A stretch of DNA of 64,000 nucleotides from Podarcis bocagei (lineage: Eukaryota): the NCBI GenBank assembly GCA_964188305.1, contig OZ076892.1, one strand, 5' to 3'. The position numbers and the translations under genes were made by a program. Under the pieces are notes generated by a model. That model was given only the letters and a program-made list of their open reading frames with translations. It had not been told where the DNA came from and searched no databases. Positions 3,791-40,760 of this stretch are shown here, piece by piece. Position 1 is the stretch's first letter, and every line of letters starts with the position of its first letter.

Positions 3791-6700
3791 ACCGTCTCCA
3801 GGATTGCTATCTCTTACTCTGATATGCTATAATATTGAAGTAAAAAATGAGGACATTTTTGGGAGCAAGATAATCCAGTGAAAGTAAGAAAATATACTGT
3901 GCCAAGGAGACATGTTGTCTTGCTCAGAAGCCTTGGGGATATTTTCACAGGCTCACCTTCTGTGACAGTTCCAGTGCTTCCGGGTACTTGCCACCTGGTC
4001 CAGCCATTAATCTGGAAACACAGGCCCCTAAAGGAATATGTATATTTTGAGAAAGGCGTAAGTTCTCTAGATACTAAAGAGTACATTATATAAAATATTG
4101 CCAAAATCAGATATTTGCCCTTATCCCTAGGAAGGTAAATGGGAGCAAGATCTGCAGATAAATATTGCTTTAGACAACTGGAAATGCATATGGAACTCTG
4201 CAACTCAAATGAATATGAGCACAAACCTTGAGTTAAAAAGTTTTACAAGTGATTGTGCAGATGATGTTTCTACCCACAGAGACTGAGGGTGCTTCCGGAC
4301 AGCAGCTCTTAAGCTGCAAACAAGTCCTGCATATTCAATTTTTCTGTGTGCACTTTTGGCACACTACCTTCCACGCAATCCCATTTCCCCCCTATCTTAA
4401 TAGTCACTGATATTCTGCTGCTTGACATCCACACTAGTGGATGGATCTTGCCTTAAAATAAAAGAATTTTAGGAACGATGCTACAGAAGCCATGGCAGGC
4501 CATAAACTCCCACTACATCCGTTAGTCGTTCTTTTTGATCATACAGAAATAATACTCTCTAAGGAAGATCAGGAAATGGTTATTTATCTTTTAATGGCTG
4601 CTGGAATATGTATTTCACGTATAACAGGAAATAGGAGGTTACAACAAGCTTTCATTGGCTGTGAAAATGTCTGGGATTTTAGTATGATGAAGCTTACTAA
4701 TTTTACTCAGACAAGAAGCAGAGTAAATTGGAAAGTTACTCAGTTGAGAGTTGAGTAAGATTTTTTGGAATTGGAAAGCAAAGGAACATATATAACCCCA
4801 ATGAGTTACTATGCACAATTTAACAGCACATAAGTTGTTAATTAATGAAAGATTATCAATTCAATCTGTAAATTCTTTGTATTGATGACACAATATGGAC
4901 AAGGCATCCTTTTGTGCTGGTGGGGGGAGGGGAGCAAGCAAGCAAGGGGTGCTAATGGACTTTCTCCATTGCCCTTTCCCCAATAGAAATCCCTGCCTTC
5001 CCCCAAACCATTAGTCCCATCCGGCATGGCTAGTGGCCAGGGATGATAAGTTGTAGTCCCAACAATACAGGGCACCACTTAAGCTACTTGTGACTTGCAG
5101 AGTCACATGATCAGGGTATTAGCTAAGCCCCGCCCCTCCTTTTGTCCCACTACTCCAGCTGAAGTTGGAGCCCTGCCTCCCTGTTGCAGTGAAATAAAAG
5201 AAGTCCACACACGAGCATCATAGTGCCTAGTGTGGCTTTGATTCATTACCAGCTCCTTCCAGCAGCTAAGAGGGCAAGCCCTGGCTCTCCTAAATCCCAG
5301 GTAAATGTGCCAAAATTGTGCTATGTGAATTCTCTCTTCGAGCCATGTTGCTCCTTCCCGTGCAGCAACACAGAAGCAAAGGGGCTGGTTTTGAGAGTGG
5401 CAAGGCAGTTGCAGCATCCAGAGGGAAGCTGCAGAGCCCCCTCCCCACATACCACGGCCCCAGGATCCTGATGCAGTTGAGATCCCAAGAGGTTGAAAGT
5501 TGCCTCGACTGCCTTGCCTGTGAGCAGCTTCCAATCAAAGCTGAGTAAGAAGGTTTCCTCCCCAGAGTTCCCAAAAAGAGCCTTGCTCTCCCCCCCGACT
5601 TGTTCCCAGGGTCACCCCCTTGCTTTGCTTTCCCCCAAGAGTTTTTGGAATCCTCCCCCTTTCTGCTTGCCAGCCACCTCCTCTGGCATATCAAAGGCTT
5701 CTATGAAGGGGCCCTTTCAGCCCGTCCACCCTGGCTTTGCCGTCGCCGGATATGCCTTGTGCGGCTGCCCTATTAATAGCCCCCCTGGCTTCGCTGGTGT
5801 TTCTCAGCCCTCCGTGGAGCTGAAAGAGCCTCTTGTGTTCCGCTCAGCATCTCCTCAGCTGTTTGCGCACTGTGTTCCCCTTCCACTCTCCCAAAGCGCC
5901 TTTTGTGCTCATTGCCTATCTGGAGAGAGTGCTCTCTATTTCCTCCGCTTTCTCTGCACACAGAGTAACTCCACATCGGTTCAGAGCTAGTTTGGGGAGG
6001 GAGAGATTGAAGCTCTGGGCTCTGCCTAACAAGGAGTGTTGGCCAACCCATAAGTAGAAGGGGAGGCTGGACAAACTTGGTGCTTAAAGCCTTTTTTTGG
6101 GAAGAGCCTCCTCTGTTTTAATTAATTAATTAATTGATTGATTGGATTTATATCCCTCCTTTCCTCTCCAAGAAACCCAGGGCAGCAAACACATGTATCA
6201 TTTAAATTAAAGAAACAAAACAAAAGAAAAGAAAACATTTTAAATCGGTTTAAAACATTGTAAAAACAACTACAATTAAAAACATCTAAAATCAGTTGCA
6301 GTTAAATTATTAAAAAAATTCTAGAAGCAGCTAAAAACATTATTCCATCCAATGATCTTAGAGTTACTTGAAACAGTATTTTGTCAGCTACTCCAGAGCC
6401 AGGGAACCACCACTGAAAAGGCCCTGTCACTATCCCAGTTACTTGGCATGCAAACTGTTTGAGGCTCAATTTCTACTGGCAGCTCTAGGTAGGGCTGGGA
6501 ATGGTCTGTGTCTGAAACCCTGGAAAGCCTTGGCTGCCAGACAGTGTTCATAATGCTGCACCAGATAGACCTAGCAGTCTGTTTTGGTATTGAGGCAGCT
6601 TCCTATGTTGCTCAGACTGGGGAGAGCAGGGAGTGCAAAGTCCTTGCAGAAGCTTGGGCCAGCCATGAGCAGCCCACCCGGTTTCCAAGTGCTGCTGCTA

Positions 6701-9246: not shown

Positions 9247-12200
9247 GCCCTTCACCCCTAAGGTCCAGGGTAGATTACAATTAAAACAAGGGCCATGGTA
9301 TGCCACAGTAAAAACTGTGTTATCTAAAGAAGGAGAATCAGCAGGAAGCCAGAGTTGGAAGGAATTGACTGTGCAGGTTAGTTTGTTGTTTGGCAACAAT
9401 TGACAGAATAATGTATGTGGGCAGCATTTGTGTTGAGCCATCAGTTACTGGGATAAATCTCTGAACGCGAGCAGAGAATTGGGTAGGATGGAGCAGGCGA
9501 TAAAGGAAAGCTGCAGATGCTGGTACAAAATAAGGAGATGGAGGGAGGGCTGATGTATTCTGTAGAGATATAGGGAGCACCAAATGGAGCTTGGAAGGGA
9601 AGCAAAATGTAAATAACACCTTTCACCTGAAGCAGAATGAAAAAACTGGTTTAGAATGTGAGTTAATTCCAGAATAAGGCCTGAAGACACAAGAACTCAC
9701 CACTTTGCTAAGCTAAGCAACCCTGGGCCTGGTCTGACCCCTGGATGGGAAACCACCTGGGAACCACAGGAATGCTCCCTTGGATTCGAAGGCCACAGAA
9801 AGGTGGGATAGAAATGTAAGAAATAAAATGTAAAACAAAAAAACCTACAAAGCATTGAAAGAACCAGATGGGTCATTGGCCTGACCCAGCAGGCTCTTTA
9901 TACATTCTTATGAACCTAGTTATTTCCTTTTTTCAGGAAAAGCTTGGGGTGGGAAGGGTTCTTCCTTTGAACGTGACTCTTTGTATGAGGGCAGAAGGGC
10001 TATAGAGCAGTTTCCTGACATTCTATCATGGCTGGTTCACTCCGGCTTTTAGACAAGAAGCCACAGCTTGTTATTTATAAACATCTAGGGAAGGGCTGTG
10101 ATGAGGAAACAAAGGTAGACCTCCATATTTACTTGCACAGGCTTTCTGCACCTACTACTCAAACCCATGTAGAGATTTGCGTTTGCTGCTGAGATGATGT
10201 GGCGATGCCAGCGACCCATGCCAGGCCAGGAGTGTGTATGCCTAGCAAACACATGCTCATCTGTTTGGTTATAAATCATGGGAGGGAGTTTCCCCTTTAA
10301 TGCAAAATGGACCACATGACATGTGGGGAAATGTCCTAAAGAAGTAGGGAAAGGGAGCAAGGTTCAAACCCACCTACCCTTGTGTGCTTACTTTTAGTTT
10401 TAGAAGTAACCCCCCTCTTCCAAACCAGTGGGCAACACATGTTTAATGAACAGGTCCATGCCTGGCTTAGCCCAGCCTGCCACCTCCCCCAAGTCCACAG
10501 AATACCCTGTTCTTTAGGTCTAGGGAATTAAGGGAAGCCTTAGTGGACAGATGTGCAGGGTGATTACTAAAGGAGGGAGCCACAGGTAATAGAAAATACA
10601 GCCATGGCTGTGATTTGGAAAGGAGGTCAGGGGAGGGGAAAGGGAGTCCTTTAGGAGGAGGGGCTTCTGGGCTGCCTGGTAGCTTGAAGTGTGTGGCCCT
10701 TTGGAGGATTCCACAAGAGGGGAGACTGAGGCATAGATCATGCAAATGGAAAATGAGGTGGTAAAACTTTTCATCTGCGCCATTTCAGATCACAAGTGGG
10801 AAACAGTTGCATGCTTCTCAATAGTAGTAGTAGTAATTATAATTATAATTTATATTCCGTCATCTGAGCAGCTTCCAGCAAATTAAATATTAGCATGTTA
10901 TTAGCATAAGAGCATATAAAACTATTCCTTACCCCACCCCCAGCTTTCTATATGTGAGTCTCAGGCTGTGAATGAGAGTTGCTTTGCTCTGTAATTCTTT
11001 TTGACATCCTTCTTGCCTGCCTAGCCTGTGGGCTGCACTGCTGACTCAGACCATAGTGAATGTCCCATCTGATGCATCTGGATCTATCTTGGGAACATAG
11101 CTTCTATGCTTGAACCACATGCCTAGGACATCACCCAGTTCCATACTCTCAATTTTTCCTGCAGACTAGAACTGCCAATTCACCCATAGCTGTTTACTGA
11201 AAGAATGGCTGAATCCAATTTTTCACCATCCAGGTATTTTGTGTGGGTGGGCAGTTTCTGCCTCTGGAGGTTAGATGTCTTGGTTATGGCATGAAACTAA
11301 AAGGAACTGAATTATATAGAGTGGGACATGATAGGTAATCACCCAGAGCCAGTTGGCAGCTAGATATCATCCTTCTCTTTGGGTCTCCTTCTGTGCAGCT
11401 GTTCAGCAGAGAGCAGCTGAGAGGGAAGACTTTGATGATGTGCAAAGTGTGCAATTGTGGTTCTTTCTTCTGTAGGAAGATCAAAGCGGAGGCAGGGGTG
11501 TCTCAGGTGGTAGACTTACGTTCCGTACAAATATGCAAAAAGTCATTCATGCATTTCTTTAATTGCGTGCATTAAGTTTTGAGGTTGCCATTGCAATTTG
11601 AAGTTTGAGATGTTGAATAGTTGTAAGGCAGACTTGCAGCTCAGCTGTTATTTGCATTCTTCTGCTGCTATGATTGAGTTTATTTTGCCTTTCGCGCATT
11701 CAGGACAGAAAGGGACGTTGAGAGCTTTTTTTACGAAGTAAAGAAAACATCTAGGGAGAAAATAGAAGGTGAAACAATTTTAGATACACCCCTTTGCTTG
11801 TAGTGTTTGCTCTTTAACTCACAATGCCTTGCCCTGCTCACTGTGTTAGGCCACTCGTGAAAGCACTTTCATGGCGACAGCTTTTTTGATCCTAAAGGCG
11901 GCAGATATGTTCAGGATTGAATGCCTGGTGCATGTGCTTGTACCACTTGGCTGTCCTTAATCAAGGCTGGCTTCATTGCCCCAAGTTTCCTGGAGTAAAC
12001 AAGCAACTAGTCCATGGGAAGGAAGCCATTGTGCCCACAAGCCTGCATCATCTTGGTATTCTAAAGCTGTCTAATGCTTCGACGTGGCAGGAAATTTGCC
12101 AAGGAAATTTACATGCAAAGTTAAAATGGTCAACAATGCAATAAAGCAGTCTGTGGCTCAAGAGTGACTTTTACTAGCACTGTGGGCTTGTCTGGAAAAA

Positions 12201-12610: not shown

Positions 12611-15600
12611 TCCACTCCACTCCACTCCACTCCCATTGCAGGGTAGCGATAGGACCTTTGCTGCAGTGGGGGATCATGCACTGCCCAGTTTTTTCTCCTT
12701 CAGGGCCAAGTGAAAGCTGCCCTGTTATTCTAGTGGGACACCATTAAGGACAGATTTTTGGCTTTAACTTGTTATTAGTGCTGGTTATGTTTTGCTTTTA
12801 GTTGTGTTTGTGGACTCATTTGCTTATGACTGTGTTTTATGGTTTTTATTATGTCAACCACTCTGGGGTGCACAAATGAAGGAAATGAAGCTATTTGCTT
12901 GTTGCATTTTAGCCTGTTTTTTAGTTCGTATTTTGTCCTCGGTGCTATTTCAACAGATGTGTATAAGCTCCCTTGGAAAGGCAAGATGTAAATAATTGCA
13001 AACATAAGGTGTCCTGGAGCTGGAAGTGATCACAATATTATTCAGCTCACAATTCAAAGGAAGGCGAAAACACTGAAGTGCAAAACAGTCACAGGCAGGG
13101 GAGGCACCTTTCCACCAAGGGATGTGGGAAGGGAGCAGGCAGTTCTTCAGGTACCAGCTTCCAAGCAGAGCAAGACTTTACATGTCAGCACCAGTGCACT
13201 AAATGGTCTTAGAAACACACCACAGCTACTGAAACTCCAAGCTTCCAGCCCCAGTAAGTAGCTGAATTTGAGCTCAGTAATTGAAGGAGAGAAAAGAATC
13301 AACTTGGCCCAGCCTTCCCATCCTGACACTGACAACTTTTGAATGCATTGACTCCCCACCCCCACCCCATTTTAAATTTTCTTGTCTGTCTTTCCTCTTT
13401 AATGTTTCGCTGTGGTCCAAGAAGGTTGATGGGTGGGTGAGTAGGAGGTACTACGTCATTTTAACTTTTGTGTTTATGGCAACAAAATTCCCCAGGCGGT
13501 CTCTGAAAAGAGACAGAAGGACCTCTGGGACTGCACGGTTTTATCCACTGAGTTGTTAGTGGGGTGGTGGAAGAGGACAAGGGAAACTGGGGGGTTGCTC
13601 TGATTGCACATGTGTGGACATTGCTCGGGGGGGGGGGCTGTTGCTAGTGAAGTTGCCAAGTGCGATTCAGAATGTGAACCACAAGATCTCAACGTTTGCA
13701 GAAAATGCTGGGAGATTTTTTTCTGAAAGAGATACTAAGGATGTATTTTGTGTCAGGTGATTACAGCCATAGGGTTGGGGGCTGGGGGTAAAATGTCTTG
13801 GCCAAGAGGGAGCAACTCTAAGAGGAAGCAGCACTCCTGGTCAGAACCAGGAAAGGGGGAACAGGAGGAAATGATTTCTCCCTGTCAATGGCTGTGATCT
13901 GCAGCAGAAGCCCCGTTCAGCAAGCTAAGGAAACAAGCAAAGGAAGTGAGTCATCCTCCTCTGTCTATTGCTGCAGCTGCACAGCGGTGGCTCTGGAGCC
14001 AGGATGACCCCCCACCCCCAGTAAGAAGGGGTGTGTGAAGTGCACCACTGTTGTGGAGGTAGTGCTGGTGTCTTTCCATCCTCCATGGTTGGGAGAAAAT
14101 TCCCAAAAGCAACAGAGGGTCAATCACATTAATGTCACCTTCTGATGCTCCAACACTTAAGAGTGTTGCTCTGGAAGGTCAGGCTCAATAGACTGCAGGA
14201 CCAGAACCATAAGCACAAGCAGACTTGCGGAGAATTAGCTGGCCTCATCTGAGGTCAAGAAGGAAATGGTCTTGGGCTCTTGGAATGTACGAGAGAGATG
14301 ACTAAAGCGCAGTGATCATCCTTAGCATTGAGCAAGGCCACTTGGCAAATCATTGCCTAGTAATCCAAGACTAGTAAAAGGAACTGGGTCACTGGTAGGA
14401 CACCTGGCCCTCACAGCTACCCTACCTTTAAGAGCACCTTTTTGATCAAAAGTTTAAAATTGATTAATCTCTGTTTGATTAAAAACTTTGCAGCTCATCT
14501 CTACCCCCCCCCCCCGCAGTGATAGCTGACAGGTCAGGTCAACTCATGGCCTGAATGAGCATCAGGTGCCTCACCCAGAGCTGGATGAAAGATGTCTTTC
14601 CGAGCAGTGTGGTGGCTGGCCTGCTTTAAAGGGCTGTTTTAAGGAGTAGGGTTAGAGAATTCATGTCAAGTGCTCTGGGGCAGCCTCCAAAGATCCCTTC
14701 CTGAAGGCTGTGTCTTGGAGACTCCCTGCAACTTTTGCCACTTCCTGGCCAGCTCAGGCTGGGCAGCAGAAGGTGAACTGTTTTGCAAATTTCTCTCTGC
14801 AGCTTGCACAGTGCTGCATACTGGTGTGCGTGCAGATCCCTCATTAACCTGGATTCATCATGCCGGCTGAGTTGATCATGGTCTGTTGCATCCACTCTTA
14901 ACTTCCTCCCTCCCAGTACCTTTGAGGGGTGGATCTGCCATTCCCAGGTGACACTGGGTTCCTCTGACGTGTGATTTCTGTGCATTCATCTTTCCTGGCA
15001 CAATTGCGTGCCTTTGCCTCATCAATCTTTCACAGTCATTCTGCTACGGTGTTGTGGGAGTACGCAATGTGTTCTTCCTAGGAAGTGCTTAAAAGGCAGG
15101 ATTGAGAGGAAGACATCCTTCGGGGGCACTTTTTATGTATATCTCAAGGAAAACAGAAGGTAGTCTAGATCCTGGAGCCACCTTTGCCAAGTTGGTGCCA
15201 TTCATGTTTTGGGAAGTAACTCCCAACAGCCCCAGTCAGCACAGGTATCATAGTCCAAAGCATATGGGGAGCAACAGATTGGAGAAGGCTCCTCTAGAGC
15301 AGCAATTCTTCTTCTTCTTTGGTGATCACTCATAGCCAAGTAAGATTGTCTTCCATGACCACGGCCTTAACAGTGAGTCTGTAAGTGACTGTGGAGGCAA
15401 ATTCTGGATCCACACGTCCTTCCACAGTGGGGATGTAGGTTTCTGGGTGGGAGTTGATCATGGTGAGGATTTGTCCAAGCTGCCTTCCTCTTAGCTCATT
15501 TCTCCCTTTTGTCCTGAGTTCGTGCTTTGAGGTCAATGACACCTTTAGTAGAGGCTGTTCTCCAACTGGAGCACTCACAGCAATTACGGCACGTGTGACC

Positions 15601-18600: not shown

Positions 18601-21600
18601 TCAGAGTTGTGGTAGCAGATTCCAAGGGGAGAAGGGAGCTTGCCTGCTTCTGGTTTGCTTGTGTGTCTGAATGGGTCTTTGTGAGAGTGGCAGTTTCTGC
18701 AGGGGGCGTTGTTCAGCCGGTGCTTTAAGTTTCCGCACTTTTGGTTTGCCCACCCATCTTGTGAACATGTGATTGCCAGGGGAGGGTTTCTTTCAGAGCC
18801 TTGCTAAGTTCTTATTGCCCTAAAATCAGGCCAGTGTGTTGATCCAGGTCATTGCTCCTTGAAGTTACCATGTGTGTATGCTGGTGCTGACTGCAAAGAT
18901 GGGGGGGGGGGCCCTCGGGGATAATTTCCTATCAAAGTGCCTCTCCCTCCCCTTTATGCACACACTCTGTCATGGGAAGAGAACTGTGTTGGTGTTCTCA
19001 GTGTGGCGTCTCATACCATTCTCAGTCCTTCTAGGTATTGAGAGGGGTCTTCCTGGCTCCTGCAGCGGACCCTCTGAGGCCCAAACCAGATGTTGCGTGT
19101 GCACGTGGCCACCAATGACTCCTTGGGAAGACAAGGTGCAGGGTGCAAATGTCTCTGTGCCTTCCTCCTCCTGTTTGGCTGCTCCATGCAAGGTGGATTG
19201 GGGACCTGTGGCATTTGGCTTGGGTCTGGGGCATTTGCATTCTGTCTTGGGGAATCCCCACTCCACCCCTGGACCTGCCACTGCCCCCCACCTGGGGGAG
19301 GTTACCAGAGTCCTGTGGCTCCCACTTTTGCTCCTTGTGCCAGTGGAGAAGACCTGACCAGACGCAGCTGTCCCCTGCTGTCATTTTATGGCGGGAGGGC
19401 AGTTGTGTACCTGGTGATGTGGCTGAGTTGGGTGGTGGTTCTGTGGGGTCCTGTTCCAGGTGGGAAGATGGCTCTATACATCAGCCTGTCTTTCACACAT
19501 TCTTCTTTCTCTCTTCCTCCCTCTCTCCTTTCTCTTCCCTCCTTTCCACATCCTTCCTGTAGAGCTACTTGGTAAGTCAAACGTTGCCATCTCAGCTTCA
19601 TCCAGGCATCCCTCACCCTTCCTCCACGCTCTTGGCTTCACTACCTGTAATCCTCTCCCCCCTCCCTCCCTCCCTCCACTCTGTTTTGGTTGGGCTTGAA
19701 ATGAAATGAAACCTCTGGAGGCCATGCTGACGCAAGTGGTGCATTGAAGGTTGGGAGCAGCTTAAGCTGATGGGGCTGACTGAGGCTCGGTTCAGCTTTG
19801 CTGGAGGCAGAGAGGAGGTGGTGATGAATGCAGGAACCTGAGGTGTAAGGTGCCGACAGGCCACATGGCAAAAACGGAAATACTAAGTTCAAAGTTGCTT
19901 CATTATTCTCAGTGAACCTTGCAACGACCCTGTAAGGCAGGCCAGCATTACTGCCCCCCATGTTGCGGATGGCCAGGCTGAGGCTAAAGAAGAGCAGCTT
20001 ACCTCAGGCCAAATTGGAGACTTGGGAGATTGTTCCAAAGCCATCTTATTTTGGCCTGCTGGCAAGCAAGACCCCATGGGAAATGGGTGTGCGCCTCCCC
20101 TGCTATGTCAACCCCCTGACTAGCCCATCCACAAACTAGCTAAGCACCTGAGATGCCAAAATCCCTGGGGCTCTTGCCTCGCCTCTGTTTAGAGTAATCT
20201 CCCCACTCCCCATTTTGTTGATAGAGTACAACTCCTACCCCCAACCCTTGGCCTTGCTTATGAGGCCTTTTAGGTCAAAATATGAGGCCTATGAGGCTTA
20301 TGAGGCCTTTTAGGTCAAAATATGTGGTGTGTGCCAGGTTTATTTATCTATAGTTTGACCATTTCAACCTTGGGCCTTTCTTGGCCTTGGAAAGTCAAGT
20401 CCCTACCTTTCAGCCTAAGCTCCCTTACAAGGTTGTTGTGAAGCTGTTTTCTAAAGACAGTGTTCTTTGTGTCTTAAAAGAAGCCTAGCATACATGAAAA
20501 CCCTTAGTTTGATTTGCAAGAGTTGCATTCAGGCCCCACCTTCCTGGGGCTGCAAAAAACTGGGTTATTTTACAGAATGTATTGCAGGCATAGGCAAACT
20601 CAGACCTCCAGGTGTTTTGGGACTACAACTCCCATCATCCCTAGCTAACAGGACCAGTAGTCAGGGATGATGGGAATTGCAGTCTCAAAACATCTGGAGG
20701 GCTGAGTTTGCCTCTGCCTGATGTATTGGGTTCAATCCCAGTTTAAAGGATTGGGTAGCAGAAAGCAATGTGAAGGAGGAAGAAGGGGTCCTACCCTCTC
20801 CACCTGCCTGAGACCCCACAGAGCCACTCCTCTGGGCAGGGGTCTGCCTCAGTGCAAGGCTGCTTCATATGCCCTGTTGCCACTTTGAAAAGGGGGATAT
20901 CAAAGGGCACATTCAAAGCACATACACTTTGGTTTCATCAGTTGAACACAAAATGGAAAAACAGCTTGAATTCTCACGGATCCAGACTGGCTCAGTCTCT
21001 CACTCTGGGGCCATCTTCTCCAACCTGGTGTTTTGAACCACAACTCCCATCAGCCTCAGCCTTCTCTGGAGGAAATCCTCCTTGGTATTGCTTATGGCAG
21101 GCATGTCCAAAGTCCATTTCGGGGGCCTAATGTGGCCCACTGGTTGGTTTAATCCAGCCCCTGTGGCAGTTTCTTTCCTGGGGTTAAAACCTAAAAAAAC
21201 CCTCAACAACTTCAATCCTAAAAAAGGTCAATAACATTGGTTGGCCCTTTGGTCAGCCCCCATGGCCCTTCACGTCATCAAATCTGGCCCTCTTTTTAAA
21301 AAGTTTGGACACCACCGGCTTATGGGATTTGTAACCCAAAACAACTGGAGGGCACCGGCTTCAGGGAAGGCTGTTCTGGAAGGTGGCTAGGTCTCCTTCA
21401 GAGGGAGACCACAATTTCCACCTGCAGCAGAGTGCCACCATTTGTCTGGGTACTTAAGGGCCCCAGGTGCTTTCAGTTAGGGACCAAAGGCCTGGTTAAA
21501 ATTGATTGGTGCAGGTTGGAATAACCATTCCTTCTCCCTTAGGCCAAAGCAAAGAGGAGGCCTTCTTGTCTTGTGCTGGGAGACACTCACAAGAGCATCC

Positions 21601-24600
21601 CTATGATCCCTCTTAGTATCCTCACCCTCGTGAACCACAAAGGCATAAGCAACAAGACATTGTCAGTGGGCACTTTTTAAGTTGGCTTTCATTTCAGGCC
21701 TGATCAGCATCACCACAGGGCCTCATTATTCCCATCTGGACACTCCTCTTTCTCTGGCTCTGCTGCACCGCTCCAGAATGGCTCTGGGGCAAATGCTGAG
21801 ATCCACCCACCTTGGGCCCAGATCCGCCCCAGAGAGTGACAGCCTTGAGATTAGGGATGGGGGAAGAGCCACTTTAAAAAGTGGAATTGGACAGGAATGC
21901 ACCCTTCAGCAACAGCTCATCAGAAGGGTGGGTTGGTGCCTTGGCTTCCATTTTCAAAAGGCCAGTTCTGGCTTTCCCCAAGCATTATTAAATTCAGCAA
22001 GCGTTATATAGGTCTCGCAGGTTCCCCTCAACTTTATAGCTCCTTTTCCCTGGGTCTTTTGGCTGCCAAGCCCAAGCATCAGGATCTCAGCCTTAGCCCT
22101 CCAATATCCTGGGGCCCACTGCCTCAACAGCTTGGCTGTTTCTTGACTTTTTCTCAGCAATCAGCCATTCTTCCAGTCTTCCCTGTTCCTCCCCACACTG
22201 GTTTTCCACCCGCCTGGCTGCTCAGTCATCTTGCTTTACCTTCTTTGCATGTGGGCTGGTGGTGGTGGTGGTGGGAGGCAACATATCTGAGTGACAGCAG
22301 GGCTGCGGTTGCACAAGGGTGGTCTTCATTGCTGTCCATCAAGCCAAGCATTTCATGGTTGGTTCTGCACACATTGTGAATTGCTTGCTGGCACCTCTGT
22401 TTTGCATAGCCTGTGATCAATGGGCGGTTGTGAGCATGGACAGCTCCAGGGGAGCCTTGATCCTAAGGGCTCTCTTGGTGTCTGTGCTTCCGACGAACTT
22501 TTGAAGTCCATGTGTCTGTGTCTCCCTTTGTGTGTCCTTGAGTATTTGTATGAGTAGCAATACCCATCCACCCCAACCCAGATTCTCACAGCGCAGTCTT
22601 CCAAGCAACTGAGTCACACAAATTTCAGCACCGCTGTGAAACTAAGGTCTGAACTTGGAATGAATTTGAACTTCTGCTTTTGAATTACAGTGTTGGAATT
22701 GTGAATGGGTTTGTGTGGGAAGGAGAGAGTGATGAATCCAGCACAAACTGGGACGGAGGAGGGAAAGGCAAGGTGCATCATGGGAGCAGGGCAGCCCTCT
22801 CAATTGACTCTAGGCGTCCCAAGGACCACTGTGCTCTGTATCTGGCTAGTGATACACAGATCCACTGCTGGGCCAACTGCTGGGACTCCTCTTGCCAGTG
22901 GGCAATTGGAAAAAGCCTGTGGGGTGAATTCAAAGAAGCAGAAAAGGATGGATCTAGACACACCTGCCCACCTTTGGAGGGTTGAAGAGCCAGAAGCCAA
23001 CATGGGCCTCTTGCCCAATTTTACTGCTACACCCAGAAAATGAAAATGCTGCATAGCAGGAGAAGGCCTCCCACTGCTTTGAGCATGACCCCTTCAGACT
23101 TGTGTGGGCCAATAGGGCTTTCTTCTCCCTGCCACCCTATATGAGAAGGACAACCTGCATCTCATGTAACATCTAGTTATTGCTAGCAGTATGATGGCTC
23201 CTCTCCCAGTCTGGAGAGTAATGCTAGATAGTAGAGGGTTGGCAAAGGACTTGTGTGAATCATGGAGGTGGAGGGAGTGGTAACAGGAGGAGCAGGAATG
23301 GTGGAGCGATTGTGCTTTGCAGAGGTCACGATGGGCCAGAAGGTAGGAAGGTGACTTCACAGATTGAAAGCGAGGAGGCTGCTGTTCCAGATGCTGTAGA
23401 ATGGCATAGTCAAAGGTGCAAAGGCAGAGTAGGGAGAAGAAGGCAGAGGTAAAGGAGAACTTGCTTCAGACTGAGAGGTCAAAAAGAGAAATATTTCATA
23501 GGAAGTGAAGAGGGTGGAGAGCTTGCATCCTTGGTGGGAGCCAACACAGGCGCTTAAGGAGAGGAGCAAGGTGCTCCTTGGAGTGGAGATGGGGACAGTT
23601 GTGACATCCTCCACTCCCTTTATTGCCTCATACGTCTTCATGAATTGGTAGCAGTTGGGGACTATGGGGTGAAATAAGGCTTGGTTCCATCATGACATCT
23701 ACAAAGTCAAATGAAGTCAGTTGAGGGAGTAGGCAGGGGAGGGCAGTGCAAAGAGACTGGGGGGGGGCATTTTTGCAAGCAATATTGAAATAGCATGGTG
23801 GGCATGTTCAGTTATGCAGAAGATGTTCCTGAAAAACAGTGAAGGTTTTGGCTTAGCCCTGTTTACAAATATAGTTATTATTGATAGATTGAGTTTAAAT
23901 TACTTGTAAACTGCTTAATATTTAAGAAAATCCAAAGCTGTATACAAAGTATTCAGTGCACAACATTCAGACTAGAAAAGACATACAGTTTGTTGCTTTC
24001 CACAGTGACCAGTGATATGACATATCTGGCCAATATCACTCCTTTCGGGATGCAGACATGGACAGAAATGTCGCCAGGGCTGATGTGGGCCAGGAGCCCA
24101 GTGCCTCCTGGAGGGCCAGCTACAGATATTAACAGTGGCCCTCACACTTTTATAGACCTATGCAATATATGCAGTCATGATGCTACTTGTCTGAAATCAT
24201 CAATTTTATCACATGTGAACAGCCATGAAAATTAAGCAAGCATGAAACTGAGCTTCCCTCTGTCATAACAATAGGGATTGAGAGCATCAGAGCATCAGAG
24301 CATCACAGTTCATCAGAATGACAAATCCTGGACAACAGGGTCAAAGACCAGTGTTTACTTATTTAAAAAGTCATTTAACCTGCTCCAGGCAAAAAGGCTT
24401 CAAAAATAGCTTGTAGATTGAACAAAAAATAGCCCCTCATAGTGTTTGGCAAACCAACTTGGGTGTGTTTCTTCACAACCCTCTGAGTATTTTAAACATC
24501 TCTCGTACAGGTCAGAGTACTCACAAAATGGTTGCTTTTGGTTCTTGGGAGCTATTCAGTAAGTCTGGATACGGGTGCATTATGCTATAATCAAACTGGT

Positions 24601-35210: not shown

Positions 35211-35345
35211 GGCTGTAGCGGAGTGGTAGAGCACCTGCTTGGCATGCAGAAGGTCCCAGGTTCAACTGTTGGCATCTTCAGATAAGAATAGGAAAGATCT
35301 TTGTTGTGGGAGGCTGCTGCCAAGCAGTGTTAGGCAAGGCTGAGT
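35211..35345 (+). mobile_element. tRNA-derived SINE fragment inside the MTSS2 3'UTR
   Basis: ggctgtagcggagtggtagagcacctgcttggcatgcagaaggtcccaggttcaa: A-box and B-box tRNA-like head without an intact acceptor stem. Confidence 0.75.
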
Positions 35346-37706
35346 TAGGTGGAGTGCTGGGTCTGGGGCAGTGTCCTCTGCCTTTTCCAATGTAAGCCTG
35401 TTTTGGCCAGGTATGGTTATGACTAAACCTGTGAGTGTGTGGCAGGGTGCCTCTTCTAACAGCATCAAAAGGGCCCCCATTTTGTCAATATTGGGTGGAT
35501 ACTTTGAAAGGGGTAAAAAGTATCTGCAGAGAGGGAAATAGCTAAACCAACCCTCTTGGTTGGTTCGTTTACCTTTGGCGATGTTGCTGCTGCTTAGCCA
35601 GATCTGATGTACAGTCAACCACATCCCATTCATGGTACAATTCCCTGATTCACCCTGACCTGCTCATGAAATTAAGAGTCCACTGCTGTAATTTAATATA
35701 TAAAAAAAGTGCCCCAGCAGAAAGTGAGGAAAGAATTGCCACAAGCAGGCTTTAAAAATGGGGGCAGAGGGGATTTACAGAAACAGGCCAGCTCCCTTGT
35801 TCTGGTTTTGACCTCCAGATTTATAACCAGATGAATATTCAGCACGGCTTCTTCCTCTGTGCTTGGAGCTGAAGGAGCATGAGTTGGACTGCAGCTCCCA
35901 GCCAGAAGCTCCAGCTTGGGCCATGCAGCTGCTGTAAGAATATCCACATTTCTCACTGTTTTAGGCCAGGGATGGAGAACTTTTCACCTTCCAATGTTAT
36001 TAAGACTCTCATCAATGCTGACCATGGGCTAGGCTGGTTTCTGGGCCTGATGGGAGTTAAGAGTTCAGCAGGCCTGGAGTTTAGGGCATGCAAGCCAGGT
36101 AGTCAGAAGGAATATAAATACAAATTGTGCCTATCACCTTTTAAAGCTGTTTTGCTTGCTTCCACCTGCCCCCCAAATTTGGAACATACCTGCCTATTCT
36201 GCCCCACAGAAACAACTTGAGGGTTTGGATAAATTCATTGAGCTTATTTATATTAGTTATGTAATGCAACTGTTTTAACAACTACTTATACCCAGATCTG
36301 GAGAGTGCAAGAGACTTGGATCTACCTTGTGCTCACCCTGATATTGTCCCAGATATTCTAGAAATCGGCTGTGTTGGCAAATGGAAAGTGATGTTGGGAA
36401 AGGGGACAGTCTTGAAAGAAAGAGAAAGTGATGGGGAAAGTCAGTGGCTGGGAATTAAGGTGGTCTAAGGTGAGGGGGAAAGAGGGAGAGGCCTTTCCCT
36501 GTGCTTGACTGGGAAGGAATCAGAGAAATGTAGAGTTGGAAGGAACCATGAGGGTCATCTAGTCCAACCCTTTGCAATGCATAAATCCTTTGTCCAAATC
36601 TTTTGGCCCTGGGTTAAGAGTCTCATGCTTTACAGATCAAGCTTCCTCAACAAATGAGGGTCCATTAAATGGCCCCTGCTGCATTACCTCCACCTTTTGT
36701 GTTTGTTGGGCTCAAGAATGAGCATGTCTTGCTTTTCTGTCCTGGGACTGTCGAGTATCCAAGGATCACTGAACAGCACAGATGTAGCACAGATGGGGTG
36801 GCTAAAGTGGGGGAGGCAGAGCCCGTGCTAGACATTAGGGGGCTTCCTTTGTCTTTGGATTGGCCAGGCATTCGAGTACAGAGCTTACCCATGCAAAGAA
36901 AAAAATAAAAGATGGGCTTCTGACAATTATTCCAAGAGAGATGCCACCACGTTTCTCATAGCAGCAGCATGGTGGTCAACAACCCTTTCTAAAGTAGAGA
37001 GAGAGCACAGCTGTGGACAGCGTTGAGTATTGTGTGGTGAGGCACGAGCAAAGCACAGCGGTGGTGAAAACACGAGGTGGCCAAAGCAGCCAACTCAAGG
37101 CCCCTTGCAAGGACTGGGGAGCCTAGAAGCCTCTGAGAAAGCACAACTGCACCTGCTCCCTCTTGCTGGATCCTCCCCGTCTCCCCATCCTTAGCCCCTG
37201 CAAGGCACAGCAGGGCCTGGTGTTGTCGTTGTTGTACATAGAGCCACAGCAGTCCCCTCCACCCTCCCCACAGCCCAGACGTCTTATGTGCGCTTGCGTG
37301 GGTGTCACGTTGTAGCCTCCTTAACTCTTATACTGTCGTAGTAATAACAGTTTAGTTTCTAACCAACCAACCTTCCTGTGGGTGCCCCCCTCCTCCCTGT
37401 CATGGCCAGAAATGACAACAGTGACAATGCGTGAGAAATGTTTGCATTTTGCTTTTTATTTTTATTTTTTTGTACAGAGGAAAAAACCCTTTAAAATGTC
37501 TCTCTCAACTGATGTTAACTATTCTGGTGCTGTTAACTTGTTCTTTTTTCTAATTTATTTTCCCTACCCCCCCCCCTTTTGCTAGCAGCCCTGGCCTTAC
37601 CCACCCACCCTCTTTCATTCTTAAAGTTAATTATCCTCTCCCTTCTCCCTTCATTTAAAATAGTCACTGCTACAAGTAACGAATGCACTGTGAAGATTCC
37701 AGTATT

Positions 37707-37712
37707 AATAAA
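37707..37712 (+). terminator. MTSS2 polyadenylation signal AATAAA
   Basis: cagtatt-AATAAA-agttgtactgt at the end of a U-rich, motif-dense UTR block. Confidence 0.75.
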
Positions 37713-38014
37713 AGTTGTACTGTAATTAACGCAAATTGGTTCCTCCCACCCCATCCCACCCATTCTTACTCTCCTACGCATAAGAGGAACAAAGCAGTTG
37801 TTTCTTCAGGCCAGGCACACAACATCCACAGGTGGTTTTCCTACCTGTAACCCTCCTGGAATCACAACACAAATGCTAACACACATTTGTCCCAGCCATT
37901 CCAGTTCTGAATTTATGGTTACAGAAATGGAAAGGTAAGTGTATTTTTAAAAAACAAAGCACCAGCTTCTATAGTTCTGACCTAGTAGGGGTTCTTGGGT
38001 CTTAAGGTGTATTT

Positions 38015-38190
38015 CAGACGAGCATAAGAGCCTGCTGGATTGTAGCAAAGGCCCATCCCGCTCTGGCAGAGACAAACCAGATGCCTGTAGGAAACTCAAA
38101 AGCAGAGCACAATAGAAACAACTCATGTGATTCCCAGCAACTGGTATTCAGAAGCACACTGCCTACAACAGTGGAGGTAGCAATCAATAG
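38015..38190 (-). mobile_element. CR1-type LINE 3' fragment
   Basis: cataagagcctgctggattgtagcaaaggcccatc...tcccagcaactggtattcagaagca; same family as 48372-48636. Confidence 0.65.
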
Positions 38191-38978
38191 CTGCGTCTCT
38201 CTGTATCTTCTCAAATGGAAAGCAATAAGCATGTGGTGGTGTTTTTTTTAGCCTTCTGGGGCCTTTCTTTTTCTAATGCTGTTGCTCTAAAGCCCCAGCC
38301 CCTGGACTAGGAGAAAGGAGCTGGGCGTTGCTGATTTCTGTGCCAGCCAGTGCATCAATCCCCAACCCTCTTCTCACAGCCATTTGCATAATTCCAACAC
38401 CTTGTAGCAAGAAACTAGCATTTCCATGCCCATAGAATCTAAAGAGCTGCATAGTATCCAAGTGTGCCTGCTTGTGTATGTGGAGAAGTAACAGGGGGGA
38501 AGTCTGAGGGGTATTATTTCTGTAGCTTCCACTATAGCAGCATAGAAGATAGTTCTTCCCCACAGCAAGCTTTACCACAGTCTTTGTCACTGACAGCTGC
38601 CCTTCACATCAATCCCCACCCCTAATCACTGAACCATTTCAAGGCTGGGCTGTGTTAGGCCTCTCCACCAGCCCCAACCTTAGTGAGGCAGCAGGGCAGC
38701 AGCAGTCCTCCCAAGGCTACACGCTGCTCCACTCTGTCTAAGAGGGCAAGACTCTTCCCAACCAGACACAGATTGCTCCCTTTTCTGCAATCCCTCACTG
38801 GCTACTGGCTCCCTTCTGATGGGCTCTCCTTTTCTTGGAGACAGAGAAGGTCCAGTGTGGCAGTTTGACACAGCATGTCAGAGCCTACTCAAAGCTGAAA
38901 GATAGAGATTTTCAGCTGACAAGAGAATTTGCTTAGTTCTACTTCTGAAATGGATGATATCCAATCCAGAACTCCCAC

Positions 38979-39106
38979 ATCCATACATGGAAGGAGAAAC
39001 AGCACTTTAAAGTAATTGTTCAGCAAAGACATTTGAAACAAAAGCAACCTGAAGCACCAGGAAACTCTTGAAAGAAGCCCAGAAAGGCTGGCCCAACTTC
39101 TAGATC
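38979..39106 (-). pseudogene. Candidate decayed IL34 exon-5 relic (frameshifted)
   Basis: Minus strand reads DLEVGP...GASG, then after a frameshift SLLNNYFKVLFLLPC, versus human IL34 DVEVSP...NAPG...ALLDNCFRVMELLYC. Similar spacing, AG/GT-like ends, expected strand and syntenic position. Alignment by eye to a recalled protein. Confidence 0.5.
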
Positions 39107-40079
39107 TGAAATCACCTGGCTTTGGGCTTAAATAAAATACTGCTCATAAGTTCTCTGTAGCCTCATCAGGCAAGTGCCCATTCCACCAAGGGGCAGTGCT
39201 GCCAGTTCCACTGTATTTCTAGCTGGACTTCAATACAGAATATTAGGTAAGGATTCCCTGCAAAGTCACCAGCAGCTCCCAGAACCCAGTTATTTTGAGG
39301 GAAAACAGACTCCCTGAGCTCATGATTATTAAAACCAGACACTGATCTCTCAGCAGCCAGCACATTTTGAACTAAACATCTGGTCCCCGTAATATCTGAA
39401 GGGCATTTGTATCTCTTCAAGCAAGTATCTGCGTTTAGGAGCTGCAGCCAGTCACAAGTTCTACAGACATCTGCACTCTGTCCTCCAGAGGTCAGGAACC
39501 TGTGCCCTTCCAAGTATTTGCTACAGCTCCCATTATCCCTGACTATTGGGCCAGGCTGACTTGGATGAATCAAACCCCTGTATTACATTTAAAACAAGTA
39601 GTCAGCCCACCATACAAACAGAGAGATCTGTCATTCATATGTAATGCAGCCCCAAGAGCAGCTCACAGGGAGGACATGCAAAAGGTTTGCTTTTGAGGAA
39701 AGTAAACATAACAGCAACATTATCTTCTCTGAAGGGCTAGAGTAGGTTGGGAGACAATTCCAGAACTTGAGCATAAACCTCCTTAGGACAGCTGAGAGGG
39801 CTGAACAAGTCTTCCACAGCAGACTAAACGGAGAGTAAGATCTCTAGAGAAATACAGAGCCTAATACTAGACACTGCAAGTGCAGGGAAACGTGGCTTTC
39901 TGCCGTCCAAAGGGTAAGAAGTGCATCATTTTAAAATGAATGATAAGATTGATCTACCCATGAATTTAATGTGCCATTGGCAGAGCTGCTCCCTAGCTCA
40001 TGTCCCCAGGAGCAGGCAAAATTCATGAGAGAAGTCACCAAACAGGTTTGTCAGCCAACCTTTAATCCAGATGCTGGGT

Positions 40080-40085
40080 TTTATT
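40080..40085 (-). terminator. SF3B3 polyadenylation signal AATAAA
   Basis: Plus-strand tttatt, ~535 nt downstream of the SF3B3 stop codon. Confidence 0.7.
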
Positions 40086-40619
40086 AAAGAAAAATCTATG
40101 GCCAGATTCACACAGGCCATCTCTTCAGCAGACAAAAGGCTAACTTGGTACAAGACTCTATTTACAAACACAGAGATAAAAACTGCAGGATGGAAAAATT
40201 ACACCAGCCATGCCCACAAGGCTTCCCAGACACTGGCCAATGGAAGAGGAGGAGCCCTAACGTCCCTGTGCTCATATCTTACCAACTCAGAAAAGGGGAC
40301 TTCATCTAGCTAGGTCACTTGACAAGGAAAGGGCACCAGAGCCTTGTCCACGGGCAGGTAGGTAGTGGGTGCAGCACCCAAACTGTCTGTAAAAAGGGTG
40401 GAGCCAGAAACACACCTGAAAGGGGAGGCCTCGCCACTTGGGAGAACCTGACTGACTCCTGGAACAGCATGGACAGAACAGGTTGATGACATGGTTGGAC
40501 TTTCAAGTCGCTGAAAGAAAACAAGAGTACCAAAGTGGGAGCAACTGGCCAAAAAAGCTCATACCCTTCAAAACATCTTTGGAACAGGAATCCCAGCCAC
40601 GTCCCTGAAAAGGCGCCTC

Positions 40620-40760
40620 TCAGAAAGCATAGCGGGTGCGGATGTCCTCTAGCTTCTTGGACACCTCTGGTGGGGTCCTGTCCAGCTCTTCTGACACGTT
40701 CTTCTGCTTGTTGGGCTCCATGGAGTTGAACTGCTCACACAGATCCCCATCAATGACATT
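40620..40760 (-). CDS. SF3B3: SF3B3 exon 26, coding part
   Basis: [46 protein letters not shown]; acceptor ctag. Confidence 0.96.
   Translation of the reverse strand, partial: NVIDGDLCEQFNSMEPNKQKNVSEELDRTPPEVSKKLEDIRTRYAF

Follow-up and report, generated by a model that had tools for sequence, protein, structure and literature searches.

The window, by which we mean the whole 64-kb stretch of DNA that was analysed, contains zero N and carries MTSS2 on the plus strand and SF3B3 on the minus strand as adjacent, convergent genes. Their stop codons lie 6,694 bp apart, and from one 3' end to the other there are about 2.3 kb without a gap. The last coding exon of MTSS2 (33142-33919, plus strand, ORF at 33179-33919) encodes the WH2 tail: the 246-residue ORF ending at the stop codon (33917-33919) has a WH2 motif (E 7e-06). 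Among named proteins it best matches an MTSS1-like protein from Gekko japonicus (92% identity, against 87% for penguin), two unnamed contigs match it at 92-93%, and the exon aligns with the last exons of gecko and sandgrouse MTSS2. The 3' UTR that follows is about 3.8 kb long (33920-37736) and has an AATAAA at 37707-37712. Over its last 420 nt (37316-37735) it shares 76% identity with the gecko, a similarity that stops exactly at 37735.

On the other side, the last coding exon of SF3B3 (40620-40760, minus strand, stop codon at 40620-40622) was placed by translation and is 90% identical to the last exon of the sandgrouse gene; the ORFs of the exons upstream match CPSF_A. The 3' UTR of SF3B3 is much shorter, about 560 nt (40060-40619, minus strand), with a minus-strand AATAAA at 40080-40085. 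The gecko SF3B3 3' UTR is similar over 40104-40491 (62%), the similarity beginning at 40104, and in single-cell RNA of a close relative the depth is near zero below about 40100 and rises above 40100. The poly(A) signals, the similarity to the gecko 3' UTRs and the RNA depth thus make it fair to take 37736-40060 as the interval separating the 3' ends, as the first-pass annotation had done. The intervening spacer (37737-40059) is where IL34 is expected. It is tiled by independent DNA contigs, holds no IL34 remnant and is unlike the gecko spacer.

Fragments of very high-copy repeats occur on both sides of the MTSS2 poly(A) site, at 35222-35265 and 36529-36581 in the MTSS2 3' UTR and at about 38075-38150 in the spacer, with word depths from thousands to 130,000 in a DNA run. 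They are probably pieces of SINEs or other transposons, and every short-read contig is interrupted there.

Searches for IL34 in the window

We searched for IL34 at the level of proteins and of profiles, exon by exon and with no joined spliced model. The Pfam scan covered every stop-free segment of 25 residues or more between 33920 and 40640 (94 on the minus strand and 97 on the plus strand, 191 altogether) and considered E-values up to 10; none of these segments, on either strand, matched the IL34 profile PF15036. When the goat IL34 exons and 37 mammalian IL34 proteins were compared with the window by tblastn, only noise was returned. The same search with seven sauropsid IL34 proteins (from Pterocles, Indicator, Anas, Anser, Chelonia, Emydura and Chelydra) gave a best E-value of 0.41 over the 64 kb. 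Finally, two IL34 HMMs, one built from sauropsids only and one from a mixture of amniotes, had a best E-value of 0.27 when run against the whole window, cut into 3,100 segments over six frames.

Finding the sauropsid probes depended on the query. From the representative library, a 53-residue exon of goat IL34 drew mammalian IL34 alone and so yielded no sauropsid probe, and a full-length camel IL34 gave mammals alone among the 120 matches listed. Cutting the camel query to 105 residues, which changes the length filter, brought up the bird and turtle proteins. Taxa in the ESM Atlas look-up are given at the level of phylum only.

The same procedures readily recover IL34 where it is present. Pfam identified four IL34 exons in the goat locus (best E 5e-18). 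By tblastn, the bird and turtle proteins recovered the goat exons with E-values between 1e-9 and 1e-7, and one another's loci with values as low as 1e-27. The sauropsid-only HMM found four goat exons (E from 7e-11 to 1.6e-5), and the mixed amniote HMM missed no core exon in goat, turtle or bird. Over all the controls, which comprised the goat, sandgrouse and turtle loci, E-values ranged from 1e-5 to 1e-27. Searches able to detect IL34 across the split between mammals and sauropsids therefore find none in the window. With Pfam, tblastn and HMMs negative and their controls positive, the two central statements of the first-pass annotation are upheld: IL34 is missing from the slot between MTSS2 and SF3B3, and no cytokine-like (here, IL34-like) exon lies between the two 3' ends on either strand. 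The size of the spacer is not a safe argument for this, since 2.3 kb would leave room for the coding part of sandgrouse IL34, which takes only 1.9 kb; it is the searches and their controls that carry the claim of absence.

The slot in other amniotes

In the sandgrouse Pterocles burchelli (locus L009), SF3B3 (plus strand, ending at 5592) is followed by IL34 on the same strand (10001-11902) and by MTSS2 on the opposite strand (from 18089). In the goat Capra hircus (locus L002), IL34 stands tail to tail with MTSS2, 2.8 kb beyond it. The order given for human, with IL34 on the strand of SF3B3 and MTSS2 opposite, is thus seen in full in the bird, and its MTSS2/IL34 pair in the goat. The sandgrouse locus is collinear with the window over the exons of SF3B3 (46712-40615) and those of MTSS2 (33921-28043), and nothing aligns between them. 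More generally, the SF3B3 and MTSS2 exons that flank IL34 in non-squamates are collinear with those of the window, with identities of 76-90%. PF15036 readily detects four or five IL34 exons in Pterocles burchelli, Capra hircus and the turtle Emydura macquarii (locus L008), whereas the lizard and the gecko have none. The coding span of IL34 itself varies widely, from 1.9 kb in the sandgrouse to 9.3 kb in the turtle and more than 7 kb in the goat. The 5' region of the goat gene also contains a tandem array with a 37-bp period (20934-21670), which is seen as regularly offset open frames. The Logan and ENA contigs that carry the last exon of MTSS2 (L003-L007) end less than 3 kb past its stop codon and were left out of the synteny comparison, as was a coelacanth MTSS2-like protein for which no gene is recorded.

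Gekko japonicus (locus L001), the squamate taken for comparison, has the same compact layout as the window, with MTSS2 followed by a convergent SF3B3 and no annotated gene between them. Annotation, Pfam, tblastn and the HMMs all failed to show IL34 at this locus, where the bird and turtle proteins reached a best tblastn E-value of 0.07. A Cys-rich stretch inside the gecko SF3B3 3' UTR (14022-14093) aligned with IL34 residues of about 162-185 (tblastn E 0.046), and we rejected this match as chance because it has no counterpart by Pfam, by the HMMs or in the window. The distance from stop codon to stop codon is 6,694 bp in the window and about 6,640 bp in the gecko, roughly half of the 12,484 bp of the sandgrouse, the one outgroup in which it was measured. 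By its best MTSS2 match, its UTR similarity and its architecture, all of which point to the gecko, the window appears to come from a squamate and, more narrowly, from a wall lizard. The pattern of sequencing runs, with many closely related species and one relative represented by numerous RNA and DNA runs, fits a wall lizard.

Spacer content and transcription

The spacer has a GC content of 46%, its longest ORF with an ATG start encodes 72 residues, and no resemblance between its 2.3 kb and the spacer of the gecko is detectable. Its appearance is that of unconstrained filler in which some repeat fragments are found. Part of it is nevertheless covered by RNA. In a related species, the depth of single-cell RNA, for which the strand is not resolved, lies at 4-25 from 37700 to 39099 and at 0-1 from 39100 to 39899, so that the cover ends in that relative where a second plus-strand AATAAA stands in the window (39131-39136). 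Cover that extends past the conserved MTSS2 poly(A) site in this way (37700-39160) may represent a distal isoform of the MTSS2 3' UTR or read-through. If the distal 3' UTR is real, only about 0.9 kb would be untranscribed between MTSS2 and SF3B3.

No canonical splice joint is listed in the interval. The contigs of the related species have a 29-nt insertion after 39230, and one contig and two reads of that species jump over 729 nt (39291-40021), the ends of the jump being non-canonical. Both differences look like indels in unconstrained spacer, not splicing. A 135-residue ORF on the minus strand (39166-39573) was considered as a gene and set aside: it has no ATG start and no RNA cover, and it is interrupted by the 29-nt indel in the relative.

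Loss of IL34 and its alternatives

We consider it very probable that an ancient deletion on the squamate stem removed IL34 from the slot between SF3B3 and MTSS2 and left UTRs and unconstrained spacer behind. The ancestral slot would have held IL34 between these two genes, the deletion would have taken it out in the stem lineage of squamates, and what is left over would be the MTSS2 3' UTR, some 2.3 kb of unconstrained spacer with a few repeat insertions, and the SF3B3 3' UTR. The timing of the loss is taken from published work (PMC13005343).

Two other readings concern the interval itself. Genes missing from sauropsid assemblies have often proved to be GC-rich sequence left unassembled, so an IL34 segment might have been collapsed or dropped here as well. 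The window has zero N, and GC stands at 46%. The short-read contigs of an independent DNA run from the same organism tile 34500-40499 evenly, at a depth of 10-15, with no unexplained loose ends: they break only at the high-copy repeats in the MTSS2 3' UTR (35222-35265 and 36529-36581) and where a heterozygous SNP stands at 38339. Collinear sequence is also seen in a related species, a 5.1-kb contig spanning 37789 to beyond 40499 with small indels only, and the layout of the gecko is identical. [quoted passage not shown] The description of the interval as gap-free and without sign of collapse therefore stands, and an assembly artefact, which we regard as extremely unlikely, is already largely refuted. 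A negligible probability attaches to the idea that a new gene or non-coding RNA took over the place of IL34 in the spacer. The single-cell RNA that ends near the second AATAAA could be read in its favour, as could the fact that the spacer is also covered by contigs from two runs whose RNA nature is a guess. This cover is most simply explained by a distal extension of the MTSS2 3' UTR, by read-through or by DNA carry-over, and the lack of a canonical joint among the splice joints listed, the short ATG ORF, the indel within the 135-residue frame and the divergence from the gecko all speak against a gene.

The remaining alternative lies outside the interval: in this lineage IL34 might have moved to another chromosomal region, or might survive in a highly diverged form. 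The gene changes rapidly, and profile searches could miss a copy that has diverged very far. The authors of the 2026 study admit as much for homology searches, and they note that in some vipers the locus has been rearranged within its chromosome (PMC13005343). Against this, BLASTn found no IL34 in 261 squamate assemblies, nor in raw reads or transcriptomes (PMC13005343). Moreover, when we drew 62 short proteins of the IL34 family from a database of 5.8 billion, in a search limited by length and shared words, the named ones came from birds, turtles and mammals, and no squamate was among them. We thus hold a move or a diverged survivor to be very unlikely in this lineage, and give as little weight to a relocated or very diverged IL34-like ligand of CSF1R elsewhere in squamates that the published BLASTn-based searches would have missed. 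If there were such a ligand, the empty slot would mark a translocation and not a loss. The first-pass annotation had left it at "lost or moved". Absence from the slot is supported in the window and in the gecko, and the choice between loss and move rests on the published genome-wide searches, our own having covered 64 kb.

Deletion in the squamate stem lineage is also the reading in print, and the suspicion that a loss in squamates had already been reported proved true. Pinheiro et al. (eLife 2020) stated that IL34 'had been lost' in Squamata (PMC7717901), and Salve, Sonal and Vijay (BMC Biol 2026) described its loss by segmental deletion over the 261 assemblies, from a slot given as COG4-SF3B3, IL34, MTSS2-VAC14, with a significantly reduced distance between SF3B3 and MTSS2 in squamates (PMC13005343). 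The absence of IL34 from this slot is therefore already known, common to all lizards and snakes and published in 2020 and 2026. The published deletion concerns the same locus as in the window, with the same SF3B3 and MTSS2 flanks, the same shortened distance and no remnant, and nothing substantive differs between the two. Whereas that work used BLASTn, the present analysis adds searches at the level of proteins and profiles with controls across amniotes, and direct distances between stop codons (6.7 kb in the lizard, 6.6 kb in the gecko and 12.5 kb in the sandgrouse).

CSF1R has two ligands, of which IL34 is one; in mammals IL34 maintains microglia and Langerhans cells. Squamates number more than 11,000 species. 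From the literature we infer that the rest of the genome lacks IL34 as well, that a single event of loss took place in the ancestor of squamates and that CSF1R now relies on CSF1. The dependence of CSF1R signalling on CSF1 is the reading of the authors of the 2026 study, who report relaxed or altered selection on CSF1R (PMC13005343). The window adds to their account a confirming instance and a more sensitive check, at the protein level, of the empty slot. Squamates without IL34 would provide a natural knockout in which to ask how CSF1 alone supports microglia and Langerhans cells, a point already made in print.
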